The notes below the pieces were generated by a model. The model was not told the origin of the DNA and made no database searches. It saw only the letters and a list, made by a program, of their open reading frames with translations. The position numbers and the translations under genes were made by a program. This document shows, piece after piece, positions 8,751 through 45,880 of a stretch of DNA of 45,880 bases; the stretch's first letter is position 1; the number at the start of each line of letters is the position of its first letter. Source of the DNA: Macrostomum lignano (Eukaryota); the NCBI GenBank assembly GCA_002269645.1, contig NIVC01004438.1, forward strand, positions 1 to 45,880, given 5' to 3'.

Positions 8751-9274
<524 letters not shown>

Positions 9275-13317: not shown

Positions 13318-13475
13318 GTGAGGAAAGAAGGATGCAGAAATCGTGTTGTTTTGTTTAAATGGGACTATTTTTTCTAGTACAAGATTAGCCTCAGCCTGTC
13401 ATTTCATCATCAGCTTTTTCTTATTGATTCCAGCACCTTGTCACTCCTCGTTAAACTGACTTGCTGACTCGCCAA

Positions 13476-15729: not shown

Positions 15730-16441
15730 TGCAGGGACTCCAATTTCCCGACCTTTTTTTACCATCCCGGGATTCTCGGGATGTCAATTTCCTGGACTTT
15801 TATAATACCGGGATTTTCAAATCCAGTAGTAACGGTGTTTTTTCTAATCCCGGGTCCTAGCGATCCCGGAAAATATTTAATCCTTTTTTATTTAATCCCA
15901 GAATTTAAAACCCGGGATTTTGTCTCGGGATCCCGGAACTGAAAACGCGGGATTTTGTCTCAGGATCTCGGAACTGAAAATATGAAGATTTTGTCCCGGG
16001 ATCCCTGGATTGGAAACCCGGGTTTTTGTCCCGGGATCCCTGGATTGGAAAGTCGGATTTTTGTCCCGGAATCCCTGGATTGGAAACCCGTTATTTTGTC
16101 CCGGAATCCCTGGATTGGAAACCTAGGATTTTGTCCCGGAATCCCTGGATTGGAAACCCGGGGTTTTGTCCCGGAATCCCTGGATTGGAAACCCGTTATT
16201 TTGTCCCGGAATCCCTGGATTGGAAACCTAGGATTTTGTCCCGGAATCCCTGGATTGGAAACCTAGGATTTTGTCCCGGAATCCCTGGATTGGAAACCCG
16301 GGGTTTTGTCCCGGAATCCCTGGATTGGAAACCTAGGATTTTGTCCCGGAATCCCTGGATTGGAAACCCGGGGTTTTGTCCCGGGATCCCTGGTTTGTAA
16401 ACCCGAGATACTGTCCCAAGATCCTGGGCTTGCATTCCCTA
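15730..16441. repeat. 35-bp tandem array (TTTGTCCCGGAATCCCTGGATTGGAAACC...) within a CCCGGG-rich, possibly MITE-like element
   Basis: Regular 35-bp period from ~16000 to 16400, with degenerate copies on both sides. TIRs are only weakly suggested. Confidence 0.8.
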
Positions 16442-20860: not shown

Positions 20861-23800
20861 AGTTTTTAAATGAGGCTTCTATGATTTTTTCTTGACGCTT
20901 CTATGATTTTTAAATGACGCTTCTATGATTTTTTACATGACGCTTCAATGATTTTTATATGACGCTTCTATGATTGTTTACATGACGCTTCAATGATTTT
21001 TTAAATGACGCTTCTATGATGTTTATATGACGCTTCTACGATTTTTTACATGACGCTTCTATGATTGTTTACATGACGCTTCTATGACTTTTTACATGAC
21101 GCTTCTACGATTTTTTACGTGACGCTTCTATGATTGTTTACATGACGCTTCTATGATTTTTTACATGACGCTTCTATGATTCATTACATGACGCTTCTAT
21201 GATTTTTTACATGACGCTTCTATGATTCATTACATGACGGTTCTATGATTTTTTACATGACGCTTCTATGATTCATTACATGACGCTTCTATGATTTTTT
21301 ACATGACGCTTCTATGATTGTTTACATGACGCTTCTATGATTTTTATATGACGCTTCTACGATTTTTTACATGGTGCTTCTATGATTTTTTACATGACGC
21401 TTCTATGATTTTTTACATGACGCTTCTATGATTTTTTACATGACGCTTCTATGATTTTTATATGACGCTTCTACGATTTTTTACATGGTGCTTCTATGAT
21501 TTTTTACATGACGCTTCTATGATTGTTTACATGACGCTTCTATGAATTTTTACATGACGCTTCTATGATTTTTAATGAGGCTTCTATGATTTTTTACATG
21601 ACGCTTCTATGATTTTTATATGACGCTTCTATGATTTTATATGACGCTTCTACGATTTTTTACATGGCGCTTCTATGATTGTTTACATGACGCTTCTATG
21701 ATTTTTAAATGAGGCTTGTATTATTTTTTACTTGACGCTTCTATGATTGTTTACATGACGCTTCTATGATTGTTTACATGACGCTTCTTTGATTGTTTAC
21801 ATGACGCTTCTATGATTGTTTACATGACGCTTCTATGATTTTTTACATGACGCTTCTATGATTTTTACATGACGCTTCTATGATTGTTTACATGACGCTT
21901 CTATGATTTTTTACATGACGCTTCTATGATTTTTACATGACGCTTCTATGATTGTTTACATGACGCTTCTATGATTTTTTACATGACGCTTCTATGATTT
22001 TTAAATGACGCTTCTATGATTTTTTCATGACGCTGCTACGATTTTTTACATGACGCTTCTATGATTGTTTACATCACGCTTTTGTGATTTTTACATGACG
22101 CTTCTATGATTTTTAAAATGACGCTTCTATGATTGTTTACATGACGCTTCTATGATTGTTTACATGACGCTTCTACGATTTTTTACATGGTGCTTCTATG
22201 ATTTTTTACATGACGCTTCTATGATTGTTTACATGACGCTTCTATGAATTTTTACATGACGCTTCTATGATTTTTAAATGAGGCTTCTATGATTTTTACA
22301 TGACGCTTCTATGACTTTTAAATGAGGCTTCTATGATTTTTTACATGACGCTTCTATGATTTTTTAAATGACGCTTCTATGATTGTTTACATCACGCTTT
22401 TGTGATTTTTACATGACGCTTCTATGATTTTTAAAATGACGCTTCTATGATTGTTTACATGACGCTTCTATGATTGTTTACATGACGCTTCTATAATTTT
22501 TTTAAATGACGCTTCTATGATTTTTTACATGACGCTTCTATGATTGTTTACATGACGCTTCTAGGATTTTTGACATGACGCTTCTATGATTGTTTACATG
22601 ACGCTTCTATGAATTTTTACAAGACGCTTCTATGATTTTTTAAATGACGCTTCTATGATTGTTTACATGACGCTTCTATGACTGTTTACATGACGCTTCA
22701 ATGATTTTTTTAAATGACGCTTCTATGATTTTTATATGACGCTTCTACGATTTTTTACATGACGCTTCCATGATTGTTTACATGACGCTTCTATGACTTT
22801 TTACATGACGCTTCTACGATTTTTTACGTGACGCTTCTATGATTGTCTACATGACGCTTCTATGATTTTTTACATGACGCTTCTATGATTGTTTACATGA
22901 CGCTTCTATGATTCATTACATGACGGTTCTATGATTTTTTACATGACGCTTCTATGATTCATTACAGGACGCTTCTATGATTTTTTACATGACGCTTCTA
23001 TGATTGTTTACATGACGCTTCTATGATTTTTATATGACGCTTCTACGATTTTTTACATGGTGCTTCTATGATTTTTTACATGACGCTTCTATGATTTTTC
23101 ACATGACGCTTCTATGATTTTTTACATGACGCTTCTATGATTTTTATATGACGCTTCTACGATTTTTTACATGGTGCTTCTATGATTTTTTACATGACGC
23201 TTCTATGATTGTTTACATGACGCTTCTATGATTTTTACATGACGCTTCTATGATTTTTAATGACGCTTCTATGATTTTTTACATGACGCTTCTATGATTT
23301 TTATATGACGCTTCTATGATTTTATATGACGCTTCTACGATTTTTTACATGGCGCTTCTATGATTGTTTACATGACGCTTCTATGATTTTTAATGACGCT
23401 TGTATTATTTTTTACTGACGCTTCTATGATTGTTTACATGACGCTTCTATGATTGTTTACATGACGCTTCTTGATTGTTTACATGACGCTTCTATGATTG
23501 TTTACATGACGCTTCTATGATTTTTTACATGACGCTTTTATGATTTTTTACATGACGCTTCTATGATTGTTTACATGACGCTTCTATGATTTTTACATGA
23601 CGCTTCTATGATTTTTAATGACGCTTCTATGATTTTTTACATGACGCTTCTATGATTTTTATATGACGCTTCTATGATTTTATATGACGCTTCTACGATT
23701 TTTTACATGGCGCTTCTATGATTGTTTACATGACGCTTCTATGATTTTTAAATGACGCTTCTATTATTTTTTACATGACGCTTCTATGATTGTTTACATG

Positions 23801-26800
23801 ACGCTTCTATGATTGTTTACATGACGCTTCTATGATTGTTTACATGACGCTTCTATGATTTTTAAATGACGCTTCTATGATTTTTACATGACGCTTCTAT
23901 GATTTTTAAATGACGCTTCTATGATTTTTTACATGACGCTTCTATGATTTTTTACATGACGCTTCTATGATTGTTTACATGACGCTTCTATGATTTTTAC
24001 ATGACGCTTCTATGATTTTTAATGACGCTTCTATGATTGTTTACATGACGCTTCTATGATTGTTTACATGACGCTTCTATGATTTTTTACATGGCTTCTA
24101 TGATTTTTACATGACGCTTCTATGATTTTTACATGACGCTTTATGATTGTTTACATGACGCTTCTATGATTTTTATATGACGCTTCTACGATTTTTACAT
24201 GGCTTCTATGATTTTTTACATGACGCTTCTATGATTGTTTACATGACGCTTCTATGATTTTTACATGACGCTTCTATGATTTTTAATGACGCTTCTATGA
24301 TTTTTACATGACGCTTCTATGATTTTTAATGACGCTTCTATGATTTTTTACATGACGCTTCTATGATTTTTACATGACGCTTCTATGATTTTTATGACGC
24401 TTCTATGATTTTTTACATGGCTTCTATGATTTTTTACATGACGCTTCTATGATTGTTTACATGACGCTTCTATGATTTTTACATGACGCTTCTATGATTT
24501 TTAATGACGCTTCTATGATTTTTTACATGACGCTTCTATGATTTTTATATGACGCTTCTATGATTTTTATGACGCTTCTATGATTTTTTACATGACGCTT
24601 CTATGATTGTTTACATGACGCTTCTATGATTTTTAATGACGCTTCTATGATTTTTTACATGACGCTTCTATGATTGTTTACATGACGCTTCTATGATTGT
24701 TTACATGACGCTTCTATGATTTTTACATGACGCTTCTATGATTGTTTACATGACGCTTCTATGATTTTTTACATGACGCTTCTATGATTTTTACATGACG
24801 CTTCTATGATTGTTTACATGACGCTTCTATGATTTTTTACATGACGCTTCTATGATTTTTACATGACGCTTCTATGATTGTTTACATGACGCTTCTATGA
24901 TTTTTACATGACGCTTCTATGATTTTTACATGACGCTTCTATGATTTTTTCATGACGCTTCTATGATTTTTACATGACGCTTCTATGATTGTTTACATGA
25001 CGCTTCTATGATTTTTACATGACGCTTCTATGATTTTTAATGACGCTTCTATGATTGTTTACATGACGCTTCTATGATTGTTTACATGACGCTTCTATGA
25101 TTTTTTACATGACGCTTCTATGATTTTTTACATGACGCTTCTATGATTGTTTACATGACGCTTCTATGATTTTTACATGACGCTTCTATGATTTTTACAT
25201 GACGCTTCTATGATTTTTACATGACGCTTCTATGATTTTTAATGACGCTTCTATGATTTTTACATGACGCTTCTATGATTTTTACATGACGCTTCTATGA
25301 TTGTTTACATGACGCTTCTATGATTGTTTACATGACGCTTCTATGATTTTTAATGACGCTTCTATGATTTTTACATGACGCTTCTATGATTGTTTACATG
25401 ACGCTTCTATGATTTTTACATGACGCTTCTATGATTGTTTACATGACGCTTCTATGATTTTTACATGACGCTTCTATGATTTTTAATGACGCTTCTATGA
25501 TTGTTTACATGACGCTTCTATGATTTTACATGACGCTTCTATGATTTTTACATGACGCTTCTATGATTTTTACATGACGCTTCTATGATTTTTACATGAC
25601 GCTTCTATGATTGTTTACATGACGCTTCTATGATTTTTACATGACGCTTCTATGATTTTTTACATGACGCTTCTATGATTGTTTACATGACGCTTCTATG
25701 ATTTTTACATGACGCTTCTATGATTTTTACATGACGCTTCTATGATTTTTTACATGACGCTTCTATGATTGTTTACATGACGCTTCTATGATTTTTACAT
25801 GACGCTTCTATGATTGTTTACATGACGCTTCTATGATTTTTACATGACGCTTCTATGATTTTTACATGACGCTTCTATGATTTTTACATGACGCTTCTAT
25901 GATTTTTTACATGACGCTTCTATGATTTTTACATGACGCTTCTATGATTTTTACATGACGCTTCTATGATTTTTACATGACGCTTCTATGATTTTTACAT
26001 GACGCTTCTATGATTTTTTACATGACGCTTCTATGATTTTTACATGACGCTTCTATGATTTTTACATGACGCTTCTATGATTTTTTACATGACGCTTCTA
26101 TGATTTTTACATGACGCTTCTATGATTTTTACATGACGCTTCTATGATTTTTACATGACGCTTCTATGATTTTTACATGACGCTTCTATGATTTTTACAT
26201 GACGCTTCTATGATTTTTATATGACGCTTCTATGATTTTTACATGACGCTTCTATGATTTTTTACATGACGCTTCTATGATTTTTTACATGACGCTTCTA
26301 TGATTTTTACATGACGCTTCTATGATTTTTACATGACGCTTCTATGATTGTTTACATGACGCTTCTATGATTTTTACATGACGCTTCTATGATTTTTACA
26401 TGACGCTTCTATGATTGTTTACATGACGCTTCTATGATTTTTACATGACGCTTCTATGATTTTTACATGACGCTTCTATGATTGTTTACATGACGCTTCT
26501 ATGATTTTTACATGACGCTTCTATGATTTTTACATGACGCTTCTATGATTTTTACATGACGCTTCTATGATTTTTACATGACGCTTCTATGATTTTTACA
26601 TGACGCTTCTATGATTTTTACATGACGCTTCTATGATTTTTACATGACGCTTCTATGATTTTTACATGACGCTTCTATGATTTTTACATGACGCTTCTAT
26701 GATTGTTTACATGACGCTTCTATGATTTTTACATGACGCTTCTATGATTTTTACATGACGCTTCTATGATTTTTACATGACGCTTCTATGATTTTTACAT

Positions 26801-29800
26801 GACGCTTCTATGATTTTTACATGACGCTTCTATGATTTTTACATGACGCTTCTATGATTTTTACATGACGCTTCTATGATTTTTACATGACGCTTCTATG
26901 ATTTTTACATGACGCTTCTATGATTTTTACATGACGCTTCTATGATTGTTTACATGACGCTTCTATGATTTTTACATGACGCTTCTATGATTTTTACATG
27001 ACGCTTCTATGATTTTTACATGACGCTTCTATGATTTTTACATGACGCTTCTATGATTTTTACATGACGCTTCTATGATTTTTACATGACGCTTCTATGA
27101 TTTTTACATGACGCTTCTATGATTTTTACATGACGCTTCTATGATTTTTACATGACGCTTCTATGATTTTTACATGACGCTTCTATGATTTTTACATGAC
27201 GCTTCTATGATTTTTACATGACGCTTCTATGATTTTTACATGACGCTTCTATGATTTTTACATGACGCTTCTATGATTTTTACATGACGCTTCTATGATT
27301 TTTACATGACGCTTCTATGATTTTTACATGACGCTTCTATGATTTTTACATGACGCTTCTATGATTGTTTACATGACGCTTCTATGATTTTTACATGACG
27401 CTTCTATGATTTTTACATGACGCTTCTATGATTTTTACATGACGCTTCTATGATTTTTACATGACGCTTCTATGATTTTTACATGACGCTTCTATGATTT
27501 TTACATGACGCTTCTATGATTTTTACATGACGCTTCTATGATTTTTACATGACGCTTCTATGATTTTTACATGACGCTTCTATGATTTTTACATGACGCT
27601 TCTATGATTTTTACATGACGCTTCTATGATTTTTACATGACGCTTCTATGATTTTTACATGACGCTTCTATGATTTTTACATGACGCTTCTATGATTTTT
27701 ACATGACGCTTCTATGATTTTTACATGACGCTTCTATGATTTTTACATGACGCTTCTATGATTTTTACATGACGCTTCTATGATTTTTACATGACGCTTC
27801 TATGATTTTTACATGACGCTTCTATGATTTTTACATGACGCTTCTATGATTTTTACATGACGCTTCTATGATTTTTACATGACGCTTCTATGATTTTTAC
27901 ATGACGCTTCTATGATTTTTACATGACGCTTCTATGATTTTTACATGACGCTTCTATGATTTTTACATGACGCTTCTATGATTTTTACATGACGCTTCTA
28001 TGATTTTTACATGACGCTTCTATGATTTTTACATGACGCTTCTATGATTTTTACATGACGCTTCTATGATTTTTACATGACGCTTCTATGATTTTTACAT
28101 GACGCTTCTATGATTTTTACATGACGCTTCTATGATTTTTACATGACGCTTCTATGATTTTTACATGACGCTTCTATGATTTTTACATGACGCTTCTATG
28201 ATTTTTACATGACGCTTCTATGATTTTTACATGACGCTTCTATGATTTTTACATGACGCTTCTATGATTTTTACATGACGCTTCTATGATTTTTACATGA
28301 CGCTTCTATGATTTTTACATGACGCTTCTATGATTTTTACATGACGCTTCTATGATTTTTACATGACGCTTCTATGATTTTTACATGACGCTTCTATGAT
28401 TTTTACATGACGCTTCTATGATTTTTACATGACGCTTCTATGATTTTTACATGACGCTTCTATGATTTTTACATGACGCTTCTATGATTTTTACATGACG
28501 CTTCTATGATTTTTACATGACGCTTCTATGATTTTTACATGACGCTTCTATGATTTTTACATGACGCTTCTATGATTTTTACATGACGCTTCTATGATTT
28601 TTACATGACGCTTCTATGATTTTTACATGACGCTTCTATGATTTTTACATGACGCTTCTATGATTTTTACATGACGCTTCTATGATTTTTACATGACGCT
28701 TCTATGATTTTTACATGACGCTTCTATGATTTTTACATGACGCTTCTATGATTTTTACATGACGCTTCTATGATTTTTACATGACGCTTCTATGATTTTT
28801 ACATGACGCTTCTATGATTTTTACATGACGCTTCTATGATTTTTACATGACGCTTCTATGATTTTTACATGACGCTTCTATGATTTTTACATGACGCTTC
28901 TATGATTTTTTACATGACGCTTCTATGATTTTTACATGACGCTTCTATGATTTTTACATGACGCTTCTATGATTTTTACATGACGCTTCTATGATTTTTA
29001 CATGACGCTTCTATGATTTTTACATGACGCTTCTATGATTTTTACATGACGCTTCTATGATTTTTTACATGACGCTTCTATGATTTTTACATGACGCTTC
29101 TATGATTTTTACATGACGCTTCTATGATTTTTACATGACGCTTCTATGATTTTTACATGACGCTTCTATGATTTTTACATGACGCTTCTATGATTTTTAC
29201 ATGACGCTTCTATGATTTTTACATGACGCTTCTATGATTTTTACATGACGCTTCTATGATTTTTACATGACGCTTCTATGATTTTTACATGACGCTTCTA
29301 TGATTTTTTACATGACGCTTCTATGATTTTTACATGACGCTTCTATGATTTTTACATGACGCTTCTATGATTTTTACATGACGCTTCTATGATTGTTTAC
29401 ATGACGCTTCTATGATTTTTACATGACGCTTCTATGATTTTTACATGACGCTTCTATGATTGTTTACATGACGCTTCTATGATTTTTACATGACGCTTCT
29501 ATGATTTTTACATGACGCTTCTATGATTGTTTACATGACGCTTCTATGATTTTTACATGACGCTTCTATGATTTTTACATGACGCTTCTATGATTTTTAC
29601 ATGACGCTTCTATGATTTTTACATGACGCTTCTATGATTTTTACATGACGCTTCTATGATTTTTACATGACGCTTCTATGATTTTTACATGACGCTTCTA
29701 TGATTTTTACATGACGCTTCTATGATTTTTACATGACGCTTCTATGATTTTTACATGACGCTTCTATGATTTTTACATGACGCTTCTATGATTTTTACAT

Positions 29801-32800
29801 GACGCTTCTATGATTTTTACATGACGCTTCTATGATTTTTACATGACGCTTCTATGATTTTTACATGACGCTTCTATGATTTTTACATGACGCTTCTATG
29901 ATTTTTACATGACGCTTCTATGATTTTTACATGACGCTTCTATGATTTTTACATGACGCTTCTATGATTTTTACATGACGCTTCTATGATTGTTTACATG
30001 ACGCTTCTATGATTTTTACATGACGCTTCTATGATTTTTACATGACGCTTCTATGATTTTTACATGACGCTTCTATGATTTTTACATGACGCTTCTATGA
30101 TTTTTTACATGACGCTTCTATGATTTTTACATGACGCTTCTATGATTTTTACATGACGCTTCTATGATTTTTACATGACGCTTCTATGATTTTTACATGA
30201 CGCTTCTATGATTTTTACATGACGCTTCTATGATTTTTACATGACGCTTCTATGATTTTTACATGACGCTTCTATGATTTTTACATGACGCTTCTATGAT
30301 TTTTACATGACGCTTCTATGATTTTTACATGACGCTTCTATGATTTTTAATGACGCTTCTATGATTTTTTACATGACGCTTCTATGATTTTTTACATGAC
30401 GCTTCTATGATTTTTACATGACGCTTCTATGATTTTTACATGACGCTTCTATGATTTTTACATGACGCTTCTATGATTTTTACATGACGCTTCTATGATT
30501 TTTACATGACGCTTCTATGATTTTTACATGACGCTTCTATGATTTTTACATGACGCTTCTATGATTTTTACATGACGCTTCTATGATTTTTATGACGCTT
30601 CTATGATTTTTACATGACGCTTCTATGATTGTTTACATGACGCTTCTATGATTTTTACATGACGCTTCTATGATTTTTACATGACGCTTCTATGATTGTT
30701 TACATGACGCTTCTATGATTTTTACATGACGCTTCTATGATTTTTACATGACGCTTCTATGATTTTTACATGACGCTTCTATGATTTTTACATGACGCTT
30801 CTATGATTTTTACATGACGCTTCTATGATTTTTACATGACGCTTCTATGATTTTTACATGACGCTTCTATGATTTTTACATGACGCTTCTATGATTTTTA
30901 CATGACGCTTCTATGATTTTTTACATGACGCTTCTATGATTTTTACATGACGCTTCTATGATTTTTACATGACGCTTCTATGATTTTTACATGACGCTTC
31001 TATGATTTTTACATGACGCTTCTATGATTTTTACATGACGCTTCTATGATTTTTACATGACGCTTCTATGATTTTTACATGACGCTTCTATGATTGTTTA
31101 CATGACGCTTCTATGATTTTTACATGACGCTTCTATGATTTTTACATGACGCTTCTATGATTTTTACATGACGCTTCTATGATTTTTACATGACGCTTCT
31201 ATGATTTTTACATGACGCTTCTATGATTTTTACATGACGCTTCTATGATTTTTACATGACGCTTCTATGATTTTTACATGACGCTTCTATGATTTTTAAT
31301 GACGCTTCTATGATTGTTTACATGACGCTTCTATGATTTTTACATGACGCTTCTATGATTTTTAATGACGCTTCTATGATTTTTACATGACGCTTCTATG
31401 ATTGTTTACATGACGCTTCTATGATTTTTACATGACGCTTCTATGATTTTTACATGACGCTTCTATGATTGTTTACATGACGCTTCTATGATTTTTACAT
31501 GACGCTTCTATGATTGTTTACATGACGCTTCTATGATTTTTACATGACGCTTCTATGATTTTTTAATGACGCTTCTATGATTTTTACATGACGCTTCTAT
31601 GATTTTTACATGACGCTTCTATGATTTTTACATGACGCTTCTATGATTTTTACATGACGCTTCTATGATTTTTTACATGACGCTTCTATGATTGTTTACA
31701 TGACGCTTCTATGATTTTTACATGACGCTTCTATGATTTTTACATGACGCTTCTATGATTTTACATGACGCTTCTATGATTTTTTACATGACGCTTCTAT
31801 GATTGTTTACATGACGCTTCTATGATTTTTACATGACGCTTCTATGATTTTTACATGACGCTTCTATGATTTTTACATGACGCTTCTATGATTTTTACAT
31901 GACGCTTCTATGATTTTACATGACGCTTCTATGATTTTTTACATGACGCTTCTATGATTTTTACATGACGCTTCTATGATTTTTACATGACGCTTCTATG
32001 ATTTTTACATGACGCTTCTATGATTTTTACATGACGCTTCTATGATTTTTTACATGACGCTTCTATGATTTTTACATGACGCTTCTATGATTTTTTACAT
32101 GACGCTTCTATGATTTTTTACATGACGCTTCTATGATTTTTATATGACGCTTCTATGATTTTTTACATGACGCTTCTATGATTTTTTACATGACGCTTCT
32201 ATGATTTTTACATGACGCTTCTATGATTTTTACATGACGCTTCTATGATTTTTACATGACGCTTCTATGATTTTTACATGACGCTTCTATGATTTTTACA
32301 TGACGCTTCTATGATTTTTACATGACGCTTCTATGATTTTTTACATGACGCTTCTATGATTTTTACATGACGCTTCTATGATTTTTATGACGCTTCTATG
32401 ATTTTTTACATGACGCTTCTATGATTGTTTACATGACGCTTCTATGATTTTTACATGACGCTTCTATGATTTTTACATGACGCTTCTATGATTGTTTACA
32501 TGACGCTTCTATGATTTTTACATGACGCTTCTATGATTTTTACATGACGCTTCTATGATTGTTTACATGACGCTTCTATGATTTTTACATGACGCTTCTA
32601 TGATTTTTACATGACGCTTCTATGATTTTTACATGACGCTTCTATGATTTTTACATGACGCTTCTATGATTTTTACATGACGCTTCTATGATTTTTTACA
32701 TGACGCTTCTATGATTTTTACATGACGCTTCTATGATTTTTATGACGCTTCTATGATTTTTTACATGACGCTTCTATGATTGTTTACATGACGCTTCTAT

Positions 32801-34210
32801 GATTTTTACATGACGCTTCTATGATTGTTTACATGACGCTTCTATGATTTTTACATGACGCTTCTATGATTTTTACATGACGCTTCTATGATTTTTAAAT
32901 GAGGCTTCTATGATTTTTACATGACGCTTCTATGATTTTTACATGACGCTTCTATGATTTTTACATGACGCTTCTATGATTTTTATATGACGCTTCTATG
33001 ATTTTTACATGACGCTTCTATGATTGTTTACATGACGCTTCTATGATTTTTACATGACGCTTCTATGATTTTTTACATGACGCTTCTATGATTTTTACAT
33101 GACGCTTCTATGATTTTTTACATGACGCTTCTATGATTTTTACATGACGCTTCTATGATTTTTATATGACGCTTCTATGATTTTTACATGACGCTTCTAT
33201 GATTTTTTACATGACGCTTCTATGATTTTTACATGACGCTTCTATGATTTTTACATGACGCTTCTATGATTTTTACATGACGCTTCTATGATTTTTACAT
33301 GACGCTTCTATGATTTTTAAATGAGGCTTCTATGATTTTTACATGACGCTTCTATGATTTTTAAATGACGCTTCTATGATTTTTACATGACGCTTCTATG
33401 ATTTTTACATGACGCTTCTATGATTTTTAATGACGCTTCTATGATTGTTTACATGACGCTTCTATGATTGTTTACATGACGCTTCTATGATTTTTAATGA
33501 CGCTTCTATGATTTTTACATGACGCTTCTATGATTGTTTACATGACGCTTCTATGATTTTTTACATGACGCTTCTATGATTGTTTACATGACGCTTCTAT
33601 GAATTTTTACATGACGCTTCTATGATTTTTTAATGACGCTTCTATGATTGTTTACATGACGCTTCTATGATTGTTTACATGACGCTTCTATGATTTTTAA
33701 ATGACGCTTCTATGATTTTTATATGACGCTTCTACGATTTTTTACATGACACTTCTATGATTGTTTACATGACGCTTCTACGATTGTTTACATGACGCTT
33801 CTATGATTGTTTACATGACGCTTCAATAATTTTTTAAATGACGCTTCTATGATTTTTATATGACGCTTCTACGATTTTTACATGACGCTTCTATGATTGT
33901 TTACATGACGCTTCTATGACTTTTTACATGACGCTTCTACGATTTTTTACGTGACGCTTCTATGATTGTTTACATGACGCTTCTACGATTTTTTACATGG
34001 TGCTTCTATGATTGTTTACATGACGCTTCTATGATTGTTTACATGACGCTTCTATGATTTTTACATGACGCTTCTACGATTTTTATATAACGCTTCTACG
34101 ATTTTTTACATGGCGCTTCTATGATTGTTTACATGACGCTTCTATGATTTTTTACATGACGCTTCTATGATTTTTTACATGACGCTTCTATGATTTTTAC
34201 ATGACGCTTC
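20841..34210. repeat. 22-bp satellite array (TTTTTACATGACGCTTCTATGA)n, about 600 monomers, in Kv intron 1
   Basis: Directly visible, with 22/23-bp variants (TTGTTTAC, TTTTTT). Pure core at about 27.4-28.9 kb and variant-rich edges. Confidence 0.99.
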
Positions 34211-35574
34211 TTTTTAAAAAGTCTTTTAGTTTTCCTGACGTTGAAAAGCTTTAATTAAAAAAATTATACTCTATGAAAATTCGAACCATCGTCGCTGAAT
34301 TTAGCAGTTCAGTTTGTTCACCTCTAGGCTAGCTCTCATCGTTTTGATAACATCAAATTTTGCACTTATATAATTCAACACTTGAAAATCCAAGCATAGA
34401 GTAAATTACACGAAGCAGTTATGACATAATCAGTTTCTCAGTCAGTCAGTATCAGTTAACAATATGCATGGTTACGCAATTTAAATCAAGTCTGGTGCTA
34501 CGCTTCCACACTGCATTTTCAATTCAAGTCGGAGTTACAATTCAGTTATGATGCAATCTATTTCAGAATCAGAATTCAACCAGTCAGTTTTTTCTCTAGC
34601 ATTCTTACAATGCATTTCAAGTCGAAAAGTTTGCTTGACCTTTGCAAAAAAGCATGTTTTTCGAATATTTAATGCCTTTAGCATCGAGCAATTTCTTAGC
34701 CACGATGCATGTACAGTCACGGGAAAATTTCTGATTGAACAGTGCAAGTTCGAACAAAATCGGTCCAGCCATTTTTTCTCTAATCGATCACATAGACACA
34801 GACAGACCATTTTTAGTATATAGGAAGTTCGCAGGCGTTAAACAGCTTGCTAATTGGTTCAGCAATAATGTACATTAGCCAGTCCACTGAAATGTACATG
34901 GCAGCTTTAGGCTGGAATTCCGAGAAAGGCAATAAAAATTGGAGTCGGGCGGAGGGGGGTAGGGTGGAAGGGCACGGTTGGAGGGTTTAATCTGGGGGGT
35001 TAAGAACCAATAAAGAAGCCTTGGCTTTTAAAATACATTAAAATGCTTCAGTTTAACTTACTACTTAACTGAAAGTAGCTTACACGCAAATGTGCTGAGT
35101 GGCCCATCTAGTTATTCTAGTATCTGTGGTCGACGTTAAATTAATTAGAAAACACTCGATGCTGGGGCTTCACCGCAGATATGCAAATAGCGACCCAGCT
35201 ATTTACATTCCGATTTGGCAAAATTCCTCCTTTGCTAGACTATAAAAATCTACATAGCAAAAAGTAACTTTGTCTCTAGAGGCGTCGCAGTGCACCCCTT
35301 TGGGAGTTCAAACTATCCTGCAGTATTCATCGGAGAGAGAATTCGACATGTTTGTCAAAGCGTTGAATCGATAATTTAAACAAAAATCTGCCCTTTGGAA
35401 CCATTTACATTTTGAGCAGCAAGACGTGCAAAAGAAGACACTACAATGCAATAATTTCCTACAATTCTGGAAAGCAACGTCCCACAACCAGTGCTGGGTC
35501 GATTCTGTCCATTCCGCTGGCTCCTGAGCACATAGGAGCTGAGATACAAGCGCGCGGACTCATGCACTGTTCAT

Positions 35575-35899: not shown

Positions 35900-36650
35900 C
35901 TGTGGGCGATGCTGCTCCTGCTGCTCATGATCTGCAGCGTGATGTGCTACTGCCTGCAGACGCACACGGCATTCCGCACGCCGAGCTCGAAGGTGTACCT
36001 GGGCAACACCACCGAGGGGCCGTGCAACAACGAGTCGCGCAGATGGAATCCAAAGTTCCGCAAAGACTGCGAAACCGAGACGATGAAAGGCTTAGTAGTA
36101 GTGGACGTCACTCTCAATGCCATATTCACATTTGAGTTCGTCATCAAGCTGGTTGTCGCGCCTGACAAGCCGAAGTTTCTGCGCTCGCCAATCTCCCTCA
36201 TGGACATCATCATCCTGGGCTCCTACTGGATCTACGTTTCCCTGACATTCTTCTACTACTATCGTCTGGGTGCTGAAGAGCTGCGCGCCTCGATGCAGGA
36301 GCAGTCGGCCGGAGTGGACCTCTGGTGGCTCAACGTGCTGTTCATGTCACAGGCGCTGCGCATATTGCGCGTCTTCAAGATCAGCAAAATCAGTCGAGGC
36401 CTCCGAGTCCTGATGCTGACGGTGAAGAAGTCGATCCCGGAGCTGGTGCTGCTGGGCTTCTTGCTGATGAACGGCATGTTCCTGTTCAGCTCCATGGTGT
36501 ACATGGCCGAGTACAATCAGTACGACACTTTCTCGGACATACCGCAGGCGTTCTGGTGGAGCATTGTGACGCTGACTACAGTGGGCTACGGGGACATTGT
36601 GCCCAAGGGCGGCCCGGGCTTCATCATCGGCTCTGTAGCGGCCGTATCTG
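35900..36650 (+). CDS. Kv channel coding exon 2: S1-S5, pore helix/filter, first half of S6
   Basis: Acceptor is tgtttcag| at 35899. The exon reads LWAMLLLLLMICSV (S1), AIFTFEF (S2), SLMDII (S3), LRILRVFKISK (S4), FWWSIVTLTTVGYGDIVP (pore). Donor is TCTG|GTGAGC at 36650/36651. Confidence 0.95.
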
Positions 36651-37339
36651 GTGAGCCCTCTAGTGCTTGCATATGTACTAGCGAACTACCGAAAGATCGG
36701 GGTACGGTTTGAACTTTTCGATACAGGATCTGGGACTCTCGAGGTGCTGGTTTACTTCTGATTGCATCCTACTTTTCGAATTATATAGCATCGGCGGTGT
36801 GAGCAGGTGTAACTGTTTGTAAATAATAGGTTGTGCTTGTAGGCATTGGTACAGGCATAGGCATATGCATAGGCATGGCATAGACATTAGCAGAGGCATA
36901 GGCATAAGCGTTACCGCGTCTTACCGCGTGTTAACTTTTAGCTTTTAGCGTTCCTAATCGGTTCCCACAGACTATATTGAACGGAAAAATCCCACGAAAA
37001 AAGTCAAAGACCTTCGTCTAGTGGAATCTGCACTGTTAGATCTACAATACCGATATTTCGGCTTCAAAATTCGAAACGGTAGTCAATTTGACTGGGATAA
37101 TAGACAATGGCATGGGCACAGTTGTTTGCTCTCACCGATAAAATGGGTGCTTTGTCCTGCCCGGGAAATTCAAATCGGACCACCCCTCCTTGCTCCAATT
37201 TCCTGCGATCCGGAATCAGCATCTCGATTGCTTTTCGCTTTTCTTTCCTAGCATTTCTCATCAGACAATGAGCCCGCATTCGATTGCCATGGCAGCTTAG
37301 GGAGTGCTCAGAACAGGCTTTGAGGGGTCAAAATCAAAT

Positions 37340-38525
37340 TGACTGTCTGTCCTACTAGTGTTTGTCTGTCATAGGGTCTGTCCTAGTATATGTCCTTGCG
37401 TCTGTCCTAGGGTCTGTCCTACTAGTGTCTGTCCCCGTGCGTCTGTCCTAGTGTCTGTCCCCGTGCGTCTGTCCTAGTGTCTGTCCTAGTGTCTATCCTT
37501 GCGTCTGTCATAGGGTCTGTCCTAGTATATGTCCTTGCGTCTGTCCTAGGGTCTGTCCTAGTGTCTGGCCTTGCGTCTGTCCTTGCGTCTGTCCTAGGGT
37601 CTGTCCTACTAGTGTCTGTCCTTGCGTCTGTCCTAGTGTCTGTCCTTGCGTCTGTCCTAGTGTCTATCCTTGCGTCTGTCATAGGGTCTGTCCTAGTATA
37701 TGTCCTTGCGTCTGTCCTAGGGTCTGTCCTAGTGTCTGGCCTTGCGTCTGTCCTTGCGTCTGTCCTAGGGTCTGTCCTACTAGTGTCTGTCCTTGCGTCT
37801 GTCCTAGTGTCTGTCCTTGCGTCTGTCCTAGTGTATGTCCTTGCATCAGTCCTAGTGTCTATCCTACTAGTGTCTATCCTACTAGTGTCTGTCTTAGTGT
37901 CTGTCCTAATGTCTGTCCTAGTGTCAGTCCTAGTGTCTGTCCTAGTGTCTGTCCTAGTGTCTGTCCTAGTGTCAGTCCTAGTGTCAGTCCTAGTGTCTGT
38001 CCTAGTGTCAGTCCTAGTGTCAGTCCTAGTGTCTGTCATGCGTCTGTCCCAGTGTCAGTCCTAGTGTCAGTCCTAGTGTCAGTCCTAGTGTCAGTCCTAG
38101 TGTCAGTCCTAGTGTCAGTCCTAGTGTCAGTCCTAGTGTCAGTCCTAGTGTCAGTCCTAGTGTCAGTCCTAGTGTCAGTCCTAGTGTCAGTCCTAGTGTC
38201 TGTCATTCGTCTGTCCTAGTGTCAGCCCTAGTGTCTGTCCCAGTGCCTCTCCCATTGTCTGTGCTAGTGTCAGTCCTAGTGTCAGTCCTAGTGTCAGTCC
38301 TAGTGTCAGCCCTAGTGTCTGTCCCAGTGCCTCTCCTATTGTCTGTGCTAGTGTCAGTCCTAGTGTCAGTCCTAGTATCAGTCCTAGTGTCAGTCCTAGT
38401 GTCAGTCCTAGTGTCAGTCCTAGTATCAGTCCTAGTGTCAGTCCTAGTGTCAGTCCTAGTGACAGTCCTAGTGTCAGTCCTAGTGTCAGTCCTAGTGTCA
38501 GTCCTAGTGTCAGTCCTAGTGTCTG
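37340..38525. repeat. Compound 12-bp minisatellite family (GTGTCTGTCCTA / GTGTCAGTCCTA / GCGTCTGTCCTT) with a 171-bp duplicated block
   Basis: Directly visible; the marker GTCTATCCT at 37491 and 37662 gives the 171-bp period. Confidence 0.95.
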
Positions 38526-39094
38526 CCCTCGTTTTTATGCCTAGCCGCGCCCAGCCAATGCCGAACGCCCGTGTTCAATAAGAAAATAAACCTGCTTTCA
38601 ATCGCAATTTTTCCATTTTTGAAAACTTTCGAATTTTAATAACTTCACTCACTCACTTACTTCATTAGAATCCCAAATGATTCTGGAAATGGCACCCTCA
38701 CCCAGTTACTTGGCGGCCTCGTTAAATACCCTTCCGGACAGGGTTTGATCTGCTGAGAATTGTCCGGCTTTTATTTTGACTTTGCTGGGATCTGCACCGC
38801 CCATTCCCAATCAGAGGCCATTCAAGGCGAGCTCAAACTGGGCCGCTTGTCCCGCCAGATCCCACTTTATCCCAGCTTCCCAATGTGGTTCTCCATCCCC
38901 CTCTCCCCTTCTGCATGCAGTCCCAATTACTTGATGAGGATCGATTTTTGCTCGCGGTCAAGCAAATGCGAGGGGAGCGAAGTCCCGCAGTGGACTGTGG
39001 GCGGCGCATTTTGGTTCATTTTTAGTGCCGTCAAAGCTGTCTGCTGCCGATTCGATTAGGACATTACTGAGATGACGCTAATAATGTAGACATT

Positions 39095-39712
39095 GGGATA
39101 GGCACTAGCACAGACAATAGGGCTGACACTAGCACAGACAATAGGGCTGACACTATTACAGACAATAGGGCTGACACTATTACAGACAATAGGGCTGACA
39201 CTAGGACAGACACTAGGACCGACACTAGGAGAGACACTAGGACAGAAACTAGGAGAGACACTAGGACAGACACTAGGACAGAAACTAGGAGAGACACTAG
39301 GACAGACACTAGGACAGACACTAGGACAGACACTAAGACAGACACTAGGACAGACACTATTGCAGACTCTAGGACAGACACTAGGACAGAAACTAGGAGA
39401 GACACTAGGACAGACACTAGGACAGACACTAGGACAGACACTAGGACAGACACTAAGACAGACACTAGGACAGACACTATTGCAGACACTAGGAGAGACA
39501 CTAGGACAGACACTAAGACAGACACTAGGACAGACACTATTGCAGACACTAGGAGAGACACTAGGACAGACACTAAGACAGACACTAGGACAGACACTAT
39601 TGCAGACACTAGGAGAGACACTAGGACAGACACTAAGACAGACACTAGGACAGACACTATTGCAGACACTAGGAGAGACACTAGGACAGACACTAAGACA
39701 GACTCTAGGACA
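39095..39712. repeat. 12-bp minisatellite (GACAGACACTAG) with a 60-bp higher-order unit, inverted relative to 37340-38525
   Basis: Reverse complement of the GTGTCTGTCCTA family; identical 60-bp blocks at 39481, 39541 and 39601. Confidence 0.95.
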
Positions 39713-40360
39713 GCGACGCCCAGAAGGCCTGCAGGTGCCTATCAGGAAGGGAGTCAATTGATGAACATTTTGGCCACAGGAAAAGAAGAAAACACAAAAA
39801 ATATGCCGGCATCTTGGAACCATTCTAACTGCTTACTGAGTCCGAATCAGTCTATAAAATTCTCCATTCCCAGTGACTCCTCACTTCCGTCCCTCTCTCG
39901 CGCAGGCTGGTCGGGTTGAGTTTCGCATGGCCGCACACGCCGCCAGAAAGTATAACGCACTGACTCACTAATCAGCATTATTCCTGTCCCGGGCATCCGT
40001 GACTGTGCCTGGCTTTAACTGGCATCAATTGGTCTTCGCCTTCTTCGCTAGCAAATTTATTTAGACTGCTGGGAGCCTAGGAAGAGTGTTCAAGGAGGAA
40101 TTCTTTGCCCATATTTGAGCTGAAGAAGGGCCTGATGAAGTCTTTCCTCTCCCAGCTGAGAGACCAAATGCGACGGATCTCAATGCCTGTCCGTTGTCAC
40201 GCAATGTGCACAATTTTCATTCACAGCTCTGCAGAGTGCATAAATTCCTGCACACTCTGGGAATTAAAACCGCTGATGAAGTTATTGATAGTTATAGCTA
40301 TTTATTCACAGTGAGAATTTCCTTTGAGAATGGAGTTGTTCGGTATAATTGGTGGTAATA

Positions 40361-40500
40361 TCGCTTTGTCGCTTTGCACGGATGAATTTGCACGGGGTAT
40401 ATTTGGTGGTACTGTCGCTTTGTCGCTTTGCACGGATGAATTTGCACGGGGTATATTTGGTGGTACTGTCGCTTTGTCGCTTTGCACGGATGAATTTGCG
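40361..40500. repeat. 54-bp tandem repeat, about 2.5 copies
   Basis: TCGCTTTGTCGCTTTGCACGGATGAATTTGC occurs three times at 54-bp spacing. Confidence 0.9.
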
Positions 40501-41480
40501 GGCCAAATTATTGAGATACAATTTGGTTATATTTTAAATTTCAATTGGTTATTCTCTTTTATTGAATCGGAGAAATCAGCCTCCATGCTACGAGCGTAGT
40601 CCTCCTGAACATTTTACAAAAACTTCCTTCAAATGAAAGTTCGCTTCCTAAATTCCTGCCAAAAAGCTCCAGTTTTTCTCCCAGCCCCACACAGTTCTGT
40701 CTCCTAAACCGGCATCTGCAATCTGGCTGACCCGATCTTCACAGACCAGCGCTTCCACGCCGCTGCGACGATCCGTCACACACAAATGGACGGACGCGTC
40801 CGCGAAAGTCCAAGTTGTCAGAGTTTTTATCCAGCTAATTTCCTTTTCATCTCTGCGCGTCTTGATTTTCCAATTATTCAGCCAATTTCATAAGACACCA
40901 GACAGGCAGGCTTTAGCTGGCTGGACAATTCGTTACTCGCGACAGCAATAGTTACAAGATTCGCCAAGTCCCCCACACACTCAGGTGATAACTATGTTGG
41001 ACCTGGCTAGTTAATCCAATCACAATCCAACGGATTTGTGTTATTTTCATGCGAAATCCCAGCTTTTTCAATAGTACGTATCTAAACCCCCGGCTCAAGT
41101 GAAGAGAATGCATGTAGTAAGAGAAGTTTCTTTGCTCAAACGTTGGTAATTAGATGCACCGGAGCTCGAGTGCTGCAGAAGCATAGGGATTTCCCTGTAT
41201 CCCCTTCTGTCTGAGCGGCGGCAATCTTCACAAAGTCAATTTTCTGTTAAGCCTCCCCCTGCCCTGACCAGCCGCAGTCGCTCACAGCACCGAAGCCGGG
41301 TGTCCCAGCGGCTTGCGGCTTAAGTCCCAATATGCTGCGCTTATTACTAGCAGTAAATGGTTCAGTCTCAACCCATCGATAATGAAATTGTCTCCGCGGG
41401 CGAAGGAGTAGAAGAAGAATAAGAAAAAAATAACAAAAAACGGATTAGCTACGGCTGATCGATCTGAAAGTCGCGCCAGG

Positions 41481-41980
41481 CAGAGGCTGGGATGGGAACA
41501 TGAAGCATGGGACATTGCAAGTGTGTCAAGCAGAGGCTGGGATGGGAACATGAAGCATGGGACATTGCAAGTGAATCAAGCAGAGGCTGGGATGGGAACA
41601 TGAAGCATGGGACATTGCAAGTGAATCAAGCAGAGGCTGGGATGGGAACATGAAGCATGGGACATTGCAAGTGAATCAAGCAGAGGCTGGGATGGGAACA
41701 TGAAGCATGGGACATTGCAAGTGTGTCAAGCAGAGGCTGGGATGGGAACATGAAGCATGGGACATTGCAAGTGTGCCAAGCAGAGGCTGGGATGGGAACA
41801 TGAAGCATGGGACATTGCAAGTGTGCCAAGCAGATGCTGGGATGGGAACATGAAGCATGGGACATTGCAAGTGTGCCAGGCAGAGGCTGGGATGGGAACA
41901 TGAAGCATGGGACATTGCAAGTGTGTCAAGCAGAGGCTGGGATGGGAACATGAAGCATGGGACATTGCAAGCGTGTCAAG
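41481..41980. repeat. 50-bp minisatellite, 10 units
   Basis: CAGAGGCTGGGATGGGAACATGAAGCATGGGACATTGCAAGTGTGTCAAG repeats at exact 50-bp steps. Confidence 0.98.
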
Positions 41981-42993
41981 CAAGTCATACGCCAAGCAAA
42001 GCGTAATGAGTATCGCATCGCATACAATCATTGGAGCTGCTTTTTAGTTGCTGCTTGACCGCAACTTTGGCTGAACTGAACTCAGATAAATCCATGCAGA
42101 TCACGCACTGGGAGCAGTGTGATACATAAAGTGCATTGCAGTCAGAGGCTTACACAGATTCCCCCGTGCAGATTTCCAATACTAGCAGCGCTCACTGTTC
42201 ACACCGCGGCGCGCTGCTTGGGTGGGTGGGGGATGTCTTTTTATCGGACCGCTGCATCGCTATAGGCATGGGATGGGGATGGGATGGGGAGCGGAAAATG
42301 GGATAAGGGGACCGGGCGCGACAGGCAGCAAGCTGAGATGGAGGAAGACAAATCCTTCGCGAAATTGCACTGCACTTCCAGCTTCCCACAGCCGCGCTCT
42401 CCGTGGACTCTCTCCTGCAGACTCTTTTTTTTCGTTTTCTCCGTCGATCTTAGCGGTCTCTGGTGGATTCGCCGCGCAGGCCAGCTCAGCCCAGAGCTGA
42501 ACTCCGGCTTTGCTTGCTTTGCGCTGGGAGGAGGGGCGAAAATTGCCCGAACATTTGTCGGTTAAGCGTTTCTTCCTCGGGAATTTATTTTCTGCCATTT
42601 GTAGACAAAAAAGCCAAAAACTTGCTTGCGTCCGATGCTTTCAATAGCGATGCGTCTATAAGAGGCTGAGCAAGGCCAAGGAAATCAGTTCGATTAGCAC
42701 ATAGGTGACCGGCTTTAGGCACCTTGTATTTACATTGGAATATTATAACAATAAATCATGACGCAATGATGAATGGCTGCAATGATCAAGCCACGGGCAT
42801 ACGGGAAGGCAATTACTAATAATTTAACGACAGGATTGAGGAATACCTGATTTTTTACTCGATTAATTTTCCTTTTTCATGTCGAGCTACAAACCGAAAA
42901 TCTTATAAGTCTACTAAGCCATATTATTAACCAGCTACTCATAGTAATCTGGCTGACATTTCAACTGAAAACTAATCCCCCTCCCTTCTGCAG

Positions 42994-43553
42994 GCTGCAT
43001 TGTGACTGGCTTGGCCATACCGATCATTGGAAACAACTTCAACACCTACTACAAGTACATGCAGAACCACCTGAAGGAGACAAAGTACATGAAGATAATG
43101 CAGAAGGACAATCAGAGCCAGCAGTGCAGCGGCCGCTATGGCCAAGGCGGCAACAAGAAGTTCATCCAACGAAATCACGACATGGACGACAAAGCGATGA
43201 ACGGCCTGATCAAGAAGAACCGGCAGCAGAACTTCTCCGCCAGGATGCCGCCGCCCATGGCCAGGCCGGCCACAACCGGCGGCTCCCCCCGAGACGTTGA
43301 CAGCCCGGTGAAGACCGCCGCCACCGCGGCTGCTGAAGCCGCCCCAACGCCCGCAGTTGTCGAAGAGTCCGTGTCAGAGACAATAACAACGGTGGCAGTG
43401 GTTGAGGAGGCCAAGATCGCCACCATGGCCGCTGTCGAATCATCACCGACTCCGCCGCCACCCCCGCCGACGCCGCCGCCGCCGCCGCCGCCACAGTCGG
43501 CTCCGTGCGCAGTGGAAGAGTCGATGGTGGAAGAGCAGGAGCAGTTTGTGTAG
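42994..43553 (+). CDS. Kv channel coding exon 3: second half of S6 and cytoplasmic C-terminus
   Basis: Branch-like ACTAAT at 42971 is followed by a pyrimidine tract and CAG| at 42993. The phase-1 join restores AVSG-CIVTGLAIPIIGNNFNTYY, which aligns with the Kv S6 GVLxIAxPVPVIVxNF. TAG stop at 43551-43553. Confidence 0.92.
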
Positions 43554-45529: not shown

Positions 45530-45880
45530 GGGGGGATCACAAACCCGAAAAATCACAACTCCGAAAAGCGCTTTCCATCATAAACCCGAAATATCATAAA
45601 CCCGAAAAATCACAACTCCGAAAAACAAAATAGCAACGCGCATCATAAACCGAAATATCATAAACCCGAATAATCACAAACCCGAAATATCATAACTCCG
45701 AAAGTTCTAGCAATGTCCAACACGTTGTATCATGTAGTTATGATATTTCGGGTTTATGATGAGCTTGCTAACACTTTCGGGTTTATGATATTTCGGGTTT
45801 ATGATGAGCGTTGCTATTAATTTTCGGAGTTATGATTTTTCGGGTTTGTGATATTTCGGGTTATGATGGGCGTTACTATT
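45530..45880. mobile_element. Foldback/MITE-like palindromic element with ~16-bp subrepeats, running off the window end
   Basis: Left arm (ATCATAAACCCGAAAT)n faces right arm (ATTTCGGGTTTATGAT)n around a unique centre at about 45704-45736. AATAGCAACGC and GCGTTGCTATT are also inverted. Confidence 0.75.

Follow-up and report, generated by a model that had tools for sequence, protein, structure and literature searches.

Kv channel subunits (voltage-gated potassium channel subunits) able to form homotetramers carry the consensus PVPVIV in the gate of the sixth transmembrane segment (S6), as defined from 27 such subunits of mouse and Nematostella, and unusual substitutions at this gate, including loss of a hinge proline, are found in 42 of 43 verified regulatory subunits, which span eight independent clusters, one of them a Nematostella Kv3 cluster (Pisupati et al., 2018; PMC6279357). 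These regulatory subunits have no consistent sequence signature in their T1 domain (PMC6279357), and no gate degeneration has been observed in alpha-subunits (PMC6279357, PMC9989356); Lara et al. (2023; PMC9989356) consider that gate degeneration predicts regulatory subunits, as a marker and not as a cause. Regulatory, or silent, subunits have been reported from vertebrates, cnidarians, ctenophores and choanoflagellates, a listing with no protostome, in a 2025 preprint that describes a vertebrate silent subunit of the Kv3 type, Kv3.5 (bioRxiv 10.1101/2025.09.21.677649). The Shaw (Kv3) family is largely expanded in lophotrochozoans, with 13 members in Lottia and 9 in Capitella (Jegla et al., 2012), and the only lophotrochozoan Shaw-like channels reported as functionally characterised are those of the flatworm Notoplana atomata, N.at-Kv3.1 and N.at-Kv3.2 (Klassen, Spencer and Gallin, 2006, 2008). 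Here we analyse a Kv subunit gene contained in a stretch of 45,880 nucleotides (nt) from the flatworm Macrostomum lignano (contig NIVC01004438.1 of assembly GCA_002269645.1, positions 1 to 45,880; hereafter, the window), whose gate reads AIPIIG.

The gene product belongs to the Shaker-type Kv superfamily as an intact, pore-forming subunit and is nearest to Shaw/Kv3. It shares with the Shaw/Kv3 alpha-subunits (human Kv3.1, PDB 7phh, and the Drosophila and Aplysia Shaw channels) the T1 motif HX5CX20CC, six transmembrane segments, the selectivity filter TVGYGD, the central glycine of S6 and the sequence NNF after the gate. Unlike them, it has an AIPIIG gate, an extra glycine at the position of Shaker A471, an S4 without the charges R1 and R2, and a long aromatic S3-S4 region; additionally, in neighbour-joining (NJ) trees the flatworm clade to which it belongs falls in a divergent spiralian group, apart from the canonical Shaws (86–87% bootstrap).

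The AIPIIG gate and its splice junction

The gene and its features, all of them on the forward (+) strand, are as follows:

14861-15328, 35900-36650 and 42994-43553, +, Kv subunit gene of three exons, with a spliced frame open over 592 codons
14861-15328, +, exon 1, from the ATG to K156, containing T1 and the T1-S1 linker, with donor CCG GCC AAG/gtgagc (sequence and translation)
15065-15151, +, T1 zinc motif H69-x5-C75-x20-C96-C97, intact (regular expression on the translation; the same residues are aligned in Kv3.1)
15329-35899, +, intron 1, of 20,571 nt, GT..AG, at the T1/S1 boundary
35900-36650, +, exon 2, from S1 to the first half of S6, residues 157-407 including the first base of the G407 codon, with acceptor tttcag/CTG TGG
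36341-36400, +, S4, residues 304-323, F-M-S-Q-A-L-R-I-L-R-V-F-K-I-S-K-I-S-R-G (Kv3.1 alignment)
36578-36595, +, K+ selectivity filter TVGYGD, residues 383-388, conserved in the flatworm clade
36651-42993, +, intron 2, of 6,343 nt, phase 1, which splits the codon of G407, the central glycine of S6, and is filled with minisatellites
42994-43553, +, exon 3, with the second half of S6 and the gate, a conserved helix following S6 (NNFNTYYKYMQN.LKE.KY), a tail of low complexity rich in Pro and Ala, the C-terminal QFV and the stop (TTT GTG TAG)
43008-43031, +, gate region G412-L-A414-I-P416-I-I-G419, at the position of PVPVIV
43542-43550, +, C-terminal Q-F-V

Pfam comparisons identified the T1 domain (BTB_2, PF02214) at residues 9-96 (E 8.9e-21) and the core of six transmembrane segments (Ion_trans, PF00520) at residues 156-427 (E 2.1e-36), and the HX5CX20CC zinc site of T1, which is a feature of Kv2 to Kv4 that is absent from Kv1, is present. 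An AlphaFold 2 (AF2) model built from 34 sequences showed a mean predicted local distance difference test (pLDDT) of 83 and a predicted template modelling score (pTM) of 0.70, with a confident T1 fold and with residues 394-451 forming a single long helix; being the model of a monomer, it supports the fold and is silent on gating state or assembly. The region of S3 and the S3-S4 linker (window positions ca. 36224-36265, residues 265-278) contains an unusual aromatic, Tyr-rich run, YWIYVSLTFFYYYR, at the usual place of the linker of the S3b-S4 paddle, and this character is kept across the clade, with up to six Tyr in succession in the trematode orthologues.

The gate is encoded immediately downstream of the junction between exons 2 and 3. 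Direct reading of the sequence indicated that exon 2 ends as GTA GCG GCC GTA TCT G/gtgagc at 36650 and that exon 3 starts as ctgcag/GC TGC ATT GTG ACT GGC TTG GCC ATA CCG ATC ATT GGA AAC AAC TTC at 42994, with a pyrimidine tract ahead of the acceptor, in a phase 1, GT-AG splice. The spliced S6 is thus made up of GFIIGSVAAVSG from exon 2, ending in VAAVSG, followed by CIVTGLAIPIIGNNF from exon 3, and the junction peptide reads V402-A-A-V-S-G407/C408-I-V-T-G412-L-A414-I-P416-I-I-G419-N-N-F422, with the codons of G412, A414, P416 and G419 at positions 43008-43010, 43014-43016, 43020-43022 and 43029-43031, respectively. In a phmmer comparison, AIPIIG aligns without gaps with PVPVIV of human Kv3.1. 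In Shaker numbering, P473 is replaced by Ala (A414), P475 is retained (P416) and V478 is replaced by Gly (G419), while a glycine is added at A471 (G412) and the central hinge glycine G466 is retained as G407. The gate does not match the homotetramer consensus P-[VI]-P-[VI]-I-V, from which it departs by non-conservative changes at positions 1 and 6.

An initial annotation of the window had proposed a Shaw-related Kv subunit with intact filter and T1, in which PVPVIV is substituted by AIPIIG. The Pfam matches, the zinc motif, the TVGYGD filter and the best match to Kv3.1 uphold the first part of that proposal; for the second, the translation and the Kv3.1 alignment agree to the base with gate codons at 43014-43031, and also with the replacement of the first hinge proline by Ala, of the V478 equivalent by Gly, and with the presence of an extra Gly two residues upstream of the hinge. 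That annotation had also foreseen that use of a different acceptor restoring PVP would refute its proposal. In this respect, tblastn comparisons of the window with canonical S6 peptides from Kv1, Kv2 and Kv3 retrieved positions 42990-43052 only, the rest being weak matches to minisatellites. There is, therefore, a single S6 site in the window and no alternative exon in it restores PVP, ruling out a mutually exclusive or alternative S6 exon within this stretch.

The orthologous loci allowed the junction to be read from unbroken DNA. In the monogenean Cichlidogyrus casuarinus, the orthologue is intronless (locus L001, 10001-11665) and the junction stretch (..AVSGCVVTGLAIPIIGNNF / ..TAVSGCVVTGLAIPIIGNNF) is continuous; likewise, the trematode Calicophoron daubneyi contains the region from S1 to the C-terminus in one exon (locus L002, 24057-25976), with an uninterrupted junction stretch (..AICGCVVTGLAIPIIGNNF / ..TAICGCVVTGLAIPIIGNNF). 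The S6 intron is thus absent from both neodermatan loci. Moreover, no residue is gained or lost at either splice junction in comparison with the full-length orthologues. Because the junction sequence is unbroken in these two orthologues, the exon 2/3 junction is well supported by homology, and the AIPIIG gate is confirmed as real at the level of genomic sequence. We discard a pseudogene or a mis-splice, since the frame is open, the splice sites are canonical and the orthologous DNA is contiguous. Mapping by tblastn indicated at least one long intron in the Calicophoron locus (L002, 10001-25979), at the T1/S1 boundary and matching the place of intron 1. The structure of the gene differs, therefore, widely by lineage, from the intronless monogenean gene to that of Macrostomum, with its extra phase 1 intron in the codon of the S6 glycine.

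Flatworm orthologues and spiralian relatives

Among the database matches listed, the top ones are all flatworm proteins, and the nearest database proteins are 52–61% identical to the transmembrane core, with no close copy. Macrostomum is a free-living flatworm, outside the parasitic Neodermata, and orthologues were found in Monogenea (Cichlidogyrus), Trematoda (Calicophoron, Dicrocoelium, Trichobilharzia, Heterobilharzia and Schistosoma japonicum, plus Clonorchis and Echinostoma as T1 fragments only) and Cestoda (Schistocephalus, Mesocestoides, Rodentolepis and Hymenolepis). All the database orthologues that reach S6 (24 of 24) contain the motif G-C-[IV]-[VL]-T-G-L-A-I-P-I-[IV]-G-N-N-F-N-T-Y-Y, and AIPI[IV]G is found in 25 of 25 clade sequences, the window included. 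Judging from these sequences, AIPIIG is far beyond chance, because all 24 database orthologues carry AIPI[IV]G. In the alignment of the 25 sequences, residues T411 to Y426 are invariant save for I418, which is either I or V. Mean identity reaches 0.94 in the S4-S5 linker (residues 324-340), 0.86 in the filter region and 0.75 in T1, and conservation in the protein is highest, above that of the filter region and T1, in the gate and the S4-S5 linker. The S4-S5 linker and the gate segment of S6 constitute the electromechanical coupling interface of Kv channels.

In all, the orthologue group is old, is present in every flatworm lineage sampled, and has its gate fixed as T-G-L-A-I-P-I-I/V-G-N-N-F. 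The suggestion in the initial annotation that this gate is lineage-specific and independently evolved does not hold in its narrow sense, because the gate is common to Macrostomum, monogeneans, trematodes and cestodes; additionally, AIPII[GS] gates appear in nemerteans and in an annelid.

Conservation extends to the voltage sensor. In S4, R1 is neutral (Phe, F304, in the window and Ser in most orthologues) and R2 is Gln, and R3, R4, K5 and K6 are retained; Q307, at R2, is invariant in 23 of 23 orthologues, as are R310, R313 and K319. S4 has thus lost its two outermost charges, and the sensor is reduced, not absent. At the other end of the protein, a C-terminal [YF][VI] occurs in 18 of the 25 clade members, counting that of the window, which ends in -QFV, with -NYV being the most frequent ending (also -DYV and -AYV). 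The tail that precedes it is otherwise unconserved, and this conserved C-terminus may be a ligand or docking site, or a trafficking signal.

Two sequences from Logan contigs, P0036 and P0209, are divergent paralogues that join the flatworm clade with 100% bootstrap and that contain TGVGYGD as filter. The model of P0036 enters apparent intron sequence 3–4 residues before the position of the S6 intron in the window, which hints at a nearby intron.

Comparisons with well-characterised channels consistently place the protein nearest to Kv3. In phmmer searches against solved structures, it scored 201 bits with human Kv3.1, 188 with Kv2.1, 187 with Kv1.2 and 173 with Kv4.2, which are moderate margins; the best match of the isolated T1 is the T1 of Aplysia Shaw (3kvt), and Foldseek comparisons with the AF2 model retrieved Kv3.1 first (29% identity), followed by Kv4. 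In an exhaustive HMMER search, members of the flatworm clade reached at least 340 bits, followed by other spiralian "Shaw-like" proteins with at most 317 bits (ca. 260–272 for the single-domain ones), by Shaws with a canonical gate from arthropods, Trichoplax and Lingula with 223–237 bits, and, with 184–187 bits, by sequences whose post-gate motif led us to assign them to Kv1, Kv2 or Kv4. An NJ tree (46 sequences, 406 columns and 300 bootstraps) separated Kv1, Kv2 and Kv4 from all the Shaw-like sequences, including the flatworm clade, with 92% bootstrap; the flatworm clade was supported at 100% (92–100% across trees), the canonical Shaws grouped at 87%, and a divergent spiralian group that includes the flatworm clade at 86%. 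From these groupings, the gene belongs to the Shaw family in a broad sense and lies outside the canonical Shaw clade, a placement for which NJ is weak evidence with sequences so divergent, where long-branch effects are possible.

The nearest relatives outside the flatworm clade, all of them automatically annotated as Shaw-like or as Kv subfamily C, mostly show atypical gates. These are AIPIIG in Lineus longissimus; AIPIIS in Lineus, Tubulanus and Owenia; PIPIIG in Owenia; SIPILG or SIPILS in Lineus; TVPIVV in Lottia; SVPAIV in Argopecten; TFPVIS in Haliotis; IVPVLV in Patella; PIAIIA in Lingula and bivalves; and TIPVLV in a second group of schistosome proteins. The Shaw-like proteins of nemerteans and annelids in which the gate is AIPII[GS] or PIPIIG (Lineus longissimus XP_064635118 and XP_064619356, Tubulanus polymorphus XP_074641338, and Owenia fusiformis CAH1777471 and CAH1801355) resemble the window protein in the context of the gate, [ST]-G-[LM]-A-I-P-I-I-[GS]-N-[NK]-F, and in belonging to the same divergent NJ group, and some nemertean and annelid Shaw-likes also contain Gln at R2 of S4 (P0137, P0127 and P0196). 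They differ in that they are just 33–40% identical to the window protein. Since the bootstrap for any sister group of the flatworm clade is at most 33%, a common origin of the AIP gate in Spiralia and its convergence cannot be told apart from these trees.

The second schistosome group (P0046 and P0049-P0051) is also Shaw-like, although very divergent; its gate reads TIPVLV, and a long insert separates T1 from S1. Its members could be partners of the AIPIIG subunit or another type of atypical subunit.

Annotation of the gene and repeats in the window

Exon 1, which encodes T1, is 90% identical to the T1 part of a protein model from Macrostomum lignano (P0022). This and a second UniProt model of the species (P0045) contain the T1 exon only, fused to an unrelated upstream open reading frame (ORF) rich in Gly and Ser, and are devoid of the channel core. 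The Macrostomum lignano gene is, therefore, effectively unannotated, probably as a consequence of its repeat-filled introns. A full-length orthologue ORF is contiguous on a Logan contig of 2.9 kb; Schistocephalus has T1 and the core as two separate gene models on the same genomic contig, and for this reason the 2.9-kb contig is probably a spliced mRNA, pointing to expression. In the 14 kb upstream of the gene, a scan from stop to stop identified only open frames derived from repeats and no other convincing gene.

Intron 1 (20.6 kb) consists mostly of a tandem array of 13.4 kb (20803-34211) with around 600 copies of a 22-nt satellite unit, ACATGACGCTTCTATGATTTTT, showing 94% matches. The array is rich in AT (GC content of 0.32 versus ca. 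0.48 elsewhere) and shows a strong AT skew. Intron 2 contains a family of 12-nt minisatellites in two arrays of opposite orientation (37363-38529 and 39088-39713) separated by ca. 560 nt, with units TGTCTGTCCTAG versus the complement CTAGGACAGACA within a 24-nt unit, which could potentially form a large inverted repeat; arrays related to these repeats (TGTC/GACA) are also found at 749-1339 and 8782-9203. Further minisatellites, with periods of 12–57 nt, occupy positions 3285-3831, 6139-6735, 7525-7977, 10023-10349, 11365-11768, 13475-14040, 15894-16417 and 41480-41982. Finally, positions 45530-45880, up to the end of the window, show a dense foldback of sub-repeats of ca. 16 nt (ATCATAAACCCGAAAT-like), with arms of up to 72 nt that are up to 100% complementary, and this structure may be a foldback element, or one resembling miniature inverted-repeat transposable elements (MITEs), cut by the end of the window.

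A possible regulatory subunit or self-sufficient channel

The initial annotation suggested that the gene could encode a silent Shaw subunit, by analogy with the regulatory subunits of vertebrates and cnidarians. The parallel stands as far as the gate is concerned, an atypical gate being a published marker of these subunits. The traits that define silent subunits, namely the lack of a homomeric current, rescue by a partner and a self-incompatible T1, are experimental ones. As with Kv5/6/8/9, Kv3.5 and the Nematostella regulatory subunits of the Shaker, Shaw and Shal types, the flatworm protein combines a non-canonical S6 gate with intact filter and T1 fold and results from a lineage-specific expansion within one subfamily; also, among regulatory subunits a hinge proline has been recurrently lost or displaced. 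The analogy with the silent Kv subunits of vertebrates (KvS) is loose, because these belong to another subfamily (Kv2, or Shab), lack the second of the two PXP prolines (PMC3440756) and carry an aromatic residue at position 6 of the gate, whereas here it is the first proline that is lost and position 6 is Gly. Orthology to vertebrate KvS is ruled out, with the protein being nearest to Kv3 and having lost the other proline.

A silent subunit is a reasonable idea, since in the literature an atypical S6 gate is taken as a strong marker of regulatory subunits, and we favour, albeit tentatively, that the AIPIIG protein acts as a regulatory (R-type) subunit. Four copies on their own would form a poorly working channel, or none, and one or two copies would join, through the Shaw-type T1, a Shaw-family subunit with a more ordinary gate. 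Within the heteromer, the Gly at the bundle-crossing position would weaken the hydrophobic seal, the single-proline hinge, aided by Gly412, would alter the bending of S6, and the S4 with few charges would reduce the gating charge; the combination of a weaker seal, a changed hinge and a lower gating charge would in turn shift the voltage range and the kinetics of the current. That gate, S4-S5 linker and post-S6 helix are strictly conserved implies that the coupling machinery is used, not decayed. The situation of the gene within a large spiralian radiation of Shaw-like genes with varied gates, resembling the mostly regulatory expansions of cnidarians, also supports a regulatory role.

Several observations weigh against this role. 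The marker has been validated in mouse and Nematostella only, and is described as non-causal, and the gate is frozen across the phylum along with the S4-S5 linker, which would equally suit a self-sufficient gating machine. We did not find a flatworm Shaw partner with a canonical gate among the matches listed, which do not amount to a flatworm-wide inventory of Shaws, and the only other flatworm Shaw-like group that surfaced is that with TIPVLV in schistosomes. Pro416 and two glycines persist in S6. Homomeric KCNQ channels achieve gating with P-A-G and with Gly at the equivalent of V478. KCNQ (Kv7) thus resembles the flatworm protein in its one-proline hinge and in this Gly; it is a separate gene family without T1, and the comparison shows only that closure is possible with a gate of this kind (for the PAG motif, see PMC3440756). 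A search of the literature for gate motifs of the AIPIIG type yielded no relevant match. A trematode transcriptome survey includes Kv channels of the A, H, Shal, Shab and KQT types, and no Shaw (PMC10728431), and the only flatworm Kv3 channels studied, N.at-Kv3.1 and N.at-Kv3.2, conduct as homomers (PMC2443804, PMC3982104).

Because of these points, it is nearly as likely that the protein forms a self-sufficient homotetramer with specialised gating, in which the hinge is rebuilt with Gly412 and Pro416, Val is changed to Gly and four S4 charges remain; this would yield a K+ conductance that depends weakly on voltage, opens easily or gates slowly, and the protein would be an ordinary alpha-subunit in flatworms. 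The most conserved block is formed by gate, S4-S5 linker and post-S6 helix, which co-vary, as would be expected from a working unit of electromechanical coupling, and both the T1 zinc motif and the filter are intact; the partner missing among the matches listed, the functional, if phenotypically atypical, Notoplana homomers and the KCNQ precedent of a Gly at the same position count in the same direction. The evidence from mutants, reviewed by Labro and Snyders (PMC3440756), cuts both ways: an AXPP variant of Kv1.5 is functional, indicating that prolines are needed in mid-S6 at positions that are not fixed, but replacement of single PXP prolines by Ala is poorly tolerated in homomers. Additionally, neither of the two fully tested species has a homotetramer-forming subunit with gate degeneration, and four Gly at the hydrophobic seal should impair closure.

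We consider it improbable that the protein conducts mainly through its voltage sensor, by means of a gating-pore (omega) current, or that it plays a non-conducting role, with the central gate being secondary. A neutral R1 and Gln at R2, which are found in all clade members, would let the sensor leak at negative voltages, since neutralisation of R1 in Shaker, or of R2/R3 in Nav1.4, produces omega currents, and N.at-Kv3.2, a flatworm channel of the Kv3 family, naturally conducts through its voltage sensor (PMC2443804, PMC3982104). However, the Gln and Phe of the flatworm protein are bulky in comparison with the Ala, Cys or Ser that open the gating pore of Shaker, and the strongest constraint falls on filter and gate, which is hard to square with an unused central pore. 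Many Shaw-type channels carry few S4 charges and are not known to show omega currents. The S4 pattern is also different: N.at-Kv3.2 contains His at R1 and Gly at R3, whereas the protein from the window has Phe (Ser in most orthologues) at R1, Gln at R2 and Arg at R3. The likeness to the Notoplana channels is, then, that of flatworm members of the Kv3 family with unusual properties, shared with N.at-Kv3.2 in the neutral residues at outer charge positions of S4, and identity with the N.at-Kv3.2 type is ruled out by the differing S4 pattern. Notoplana proteins were not among the named matches of a word-based search that catches anything sharing the invariant stretches of the clade, and for this reason the Notoplana Kv3 channels are probably outside the AIPIIG orthologue group.

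That the gate is an artefact, whether from a wrong junction, an overlooked exon restoring PVP or a decaying pseudogene, is close to refuted. The public Macrostomum lignano model spans exon 1 only, but the splice sites are canonical and in phase, the frame is open for 592 residues, the junction is contiguous in two orthologues, there is no second S6 exon and the gate is the same in 25 of 25 sequences; also, the contiguous full-length orthologue ORF is on a contig that is probably mRNA.

Although the gene belongs, as an ordinary member, to a well-known superfamily, if the AIPIIG proteins are regulatory they would be the first Kv subunits of this obligately heteromeric type to be recognised in a protostome. 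They might then represent a phylum-wide, flatworm-specific Shaw modifier within an unrecognised spiralian radiation of R-type Shaws that parallels the cnidarian one, a possibility that we put forward with caution and somewhat short of conviction. In a bolder variant, the neutral outer charges of S4 would give rise to a physiological gating-pore leak, as in N.at-Kv3.2. Independently of which role applies, the gate is a natural experiment on Kv channels, with a single-proline hinge and Gly at the hydrophobic seal fixed in every flatworm orthologue recovered, and its being frozen across the phylum offers a clean test both of the rule by which regulatory subunits are predicted from an atypical gate and of the two-step model of these subunits' evolution. 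Either way, schistosomes, liver flukes and tapeworms would carry a conserved pore subunit with non-canonical residues in the inner cavity and gate. The orthologue group occurs in schistosomes, liver flukes, rumen flukes and tapeworms, and, because its cavity and gate residues are unlike those of the canonical Kv channels used for comparison, human ones among them, it may offer a selective drug target.

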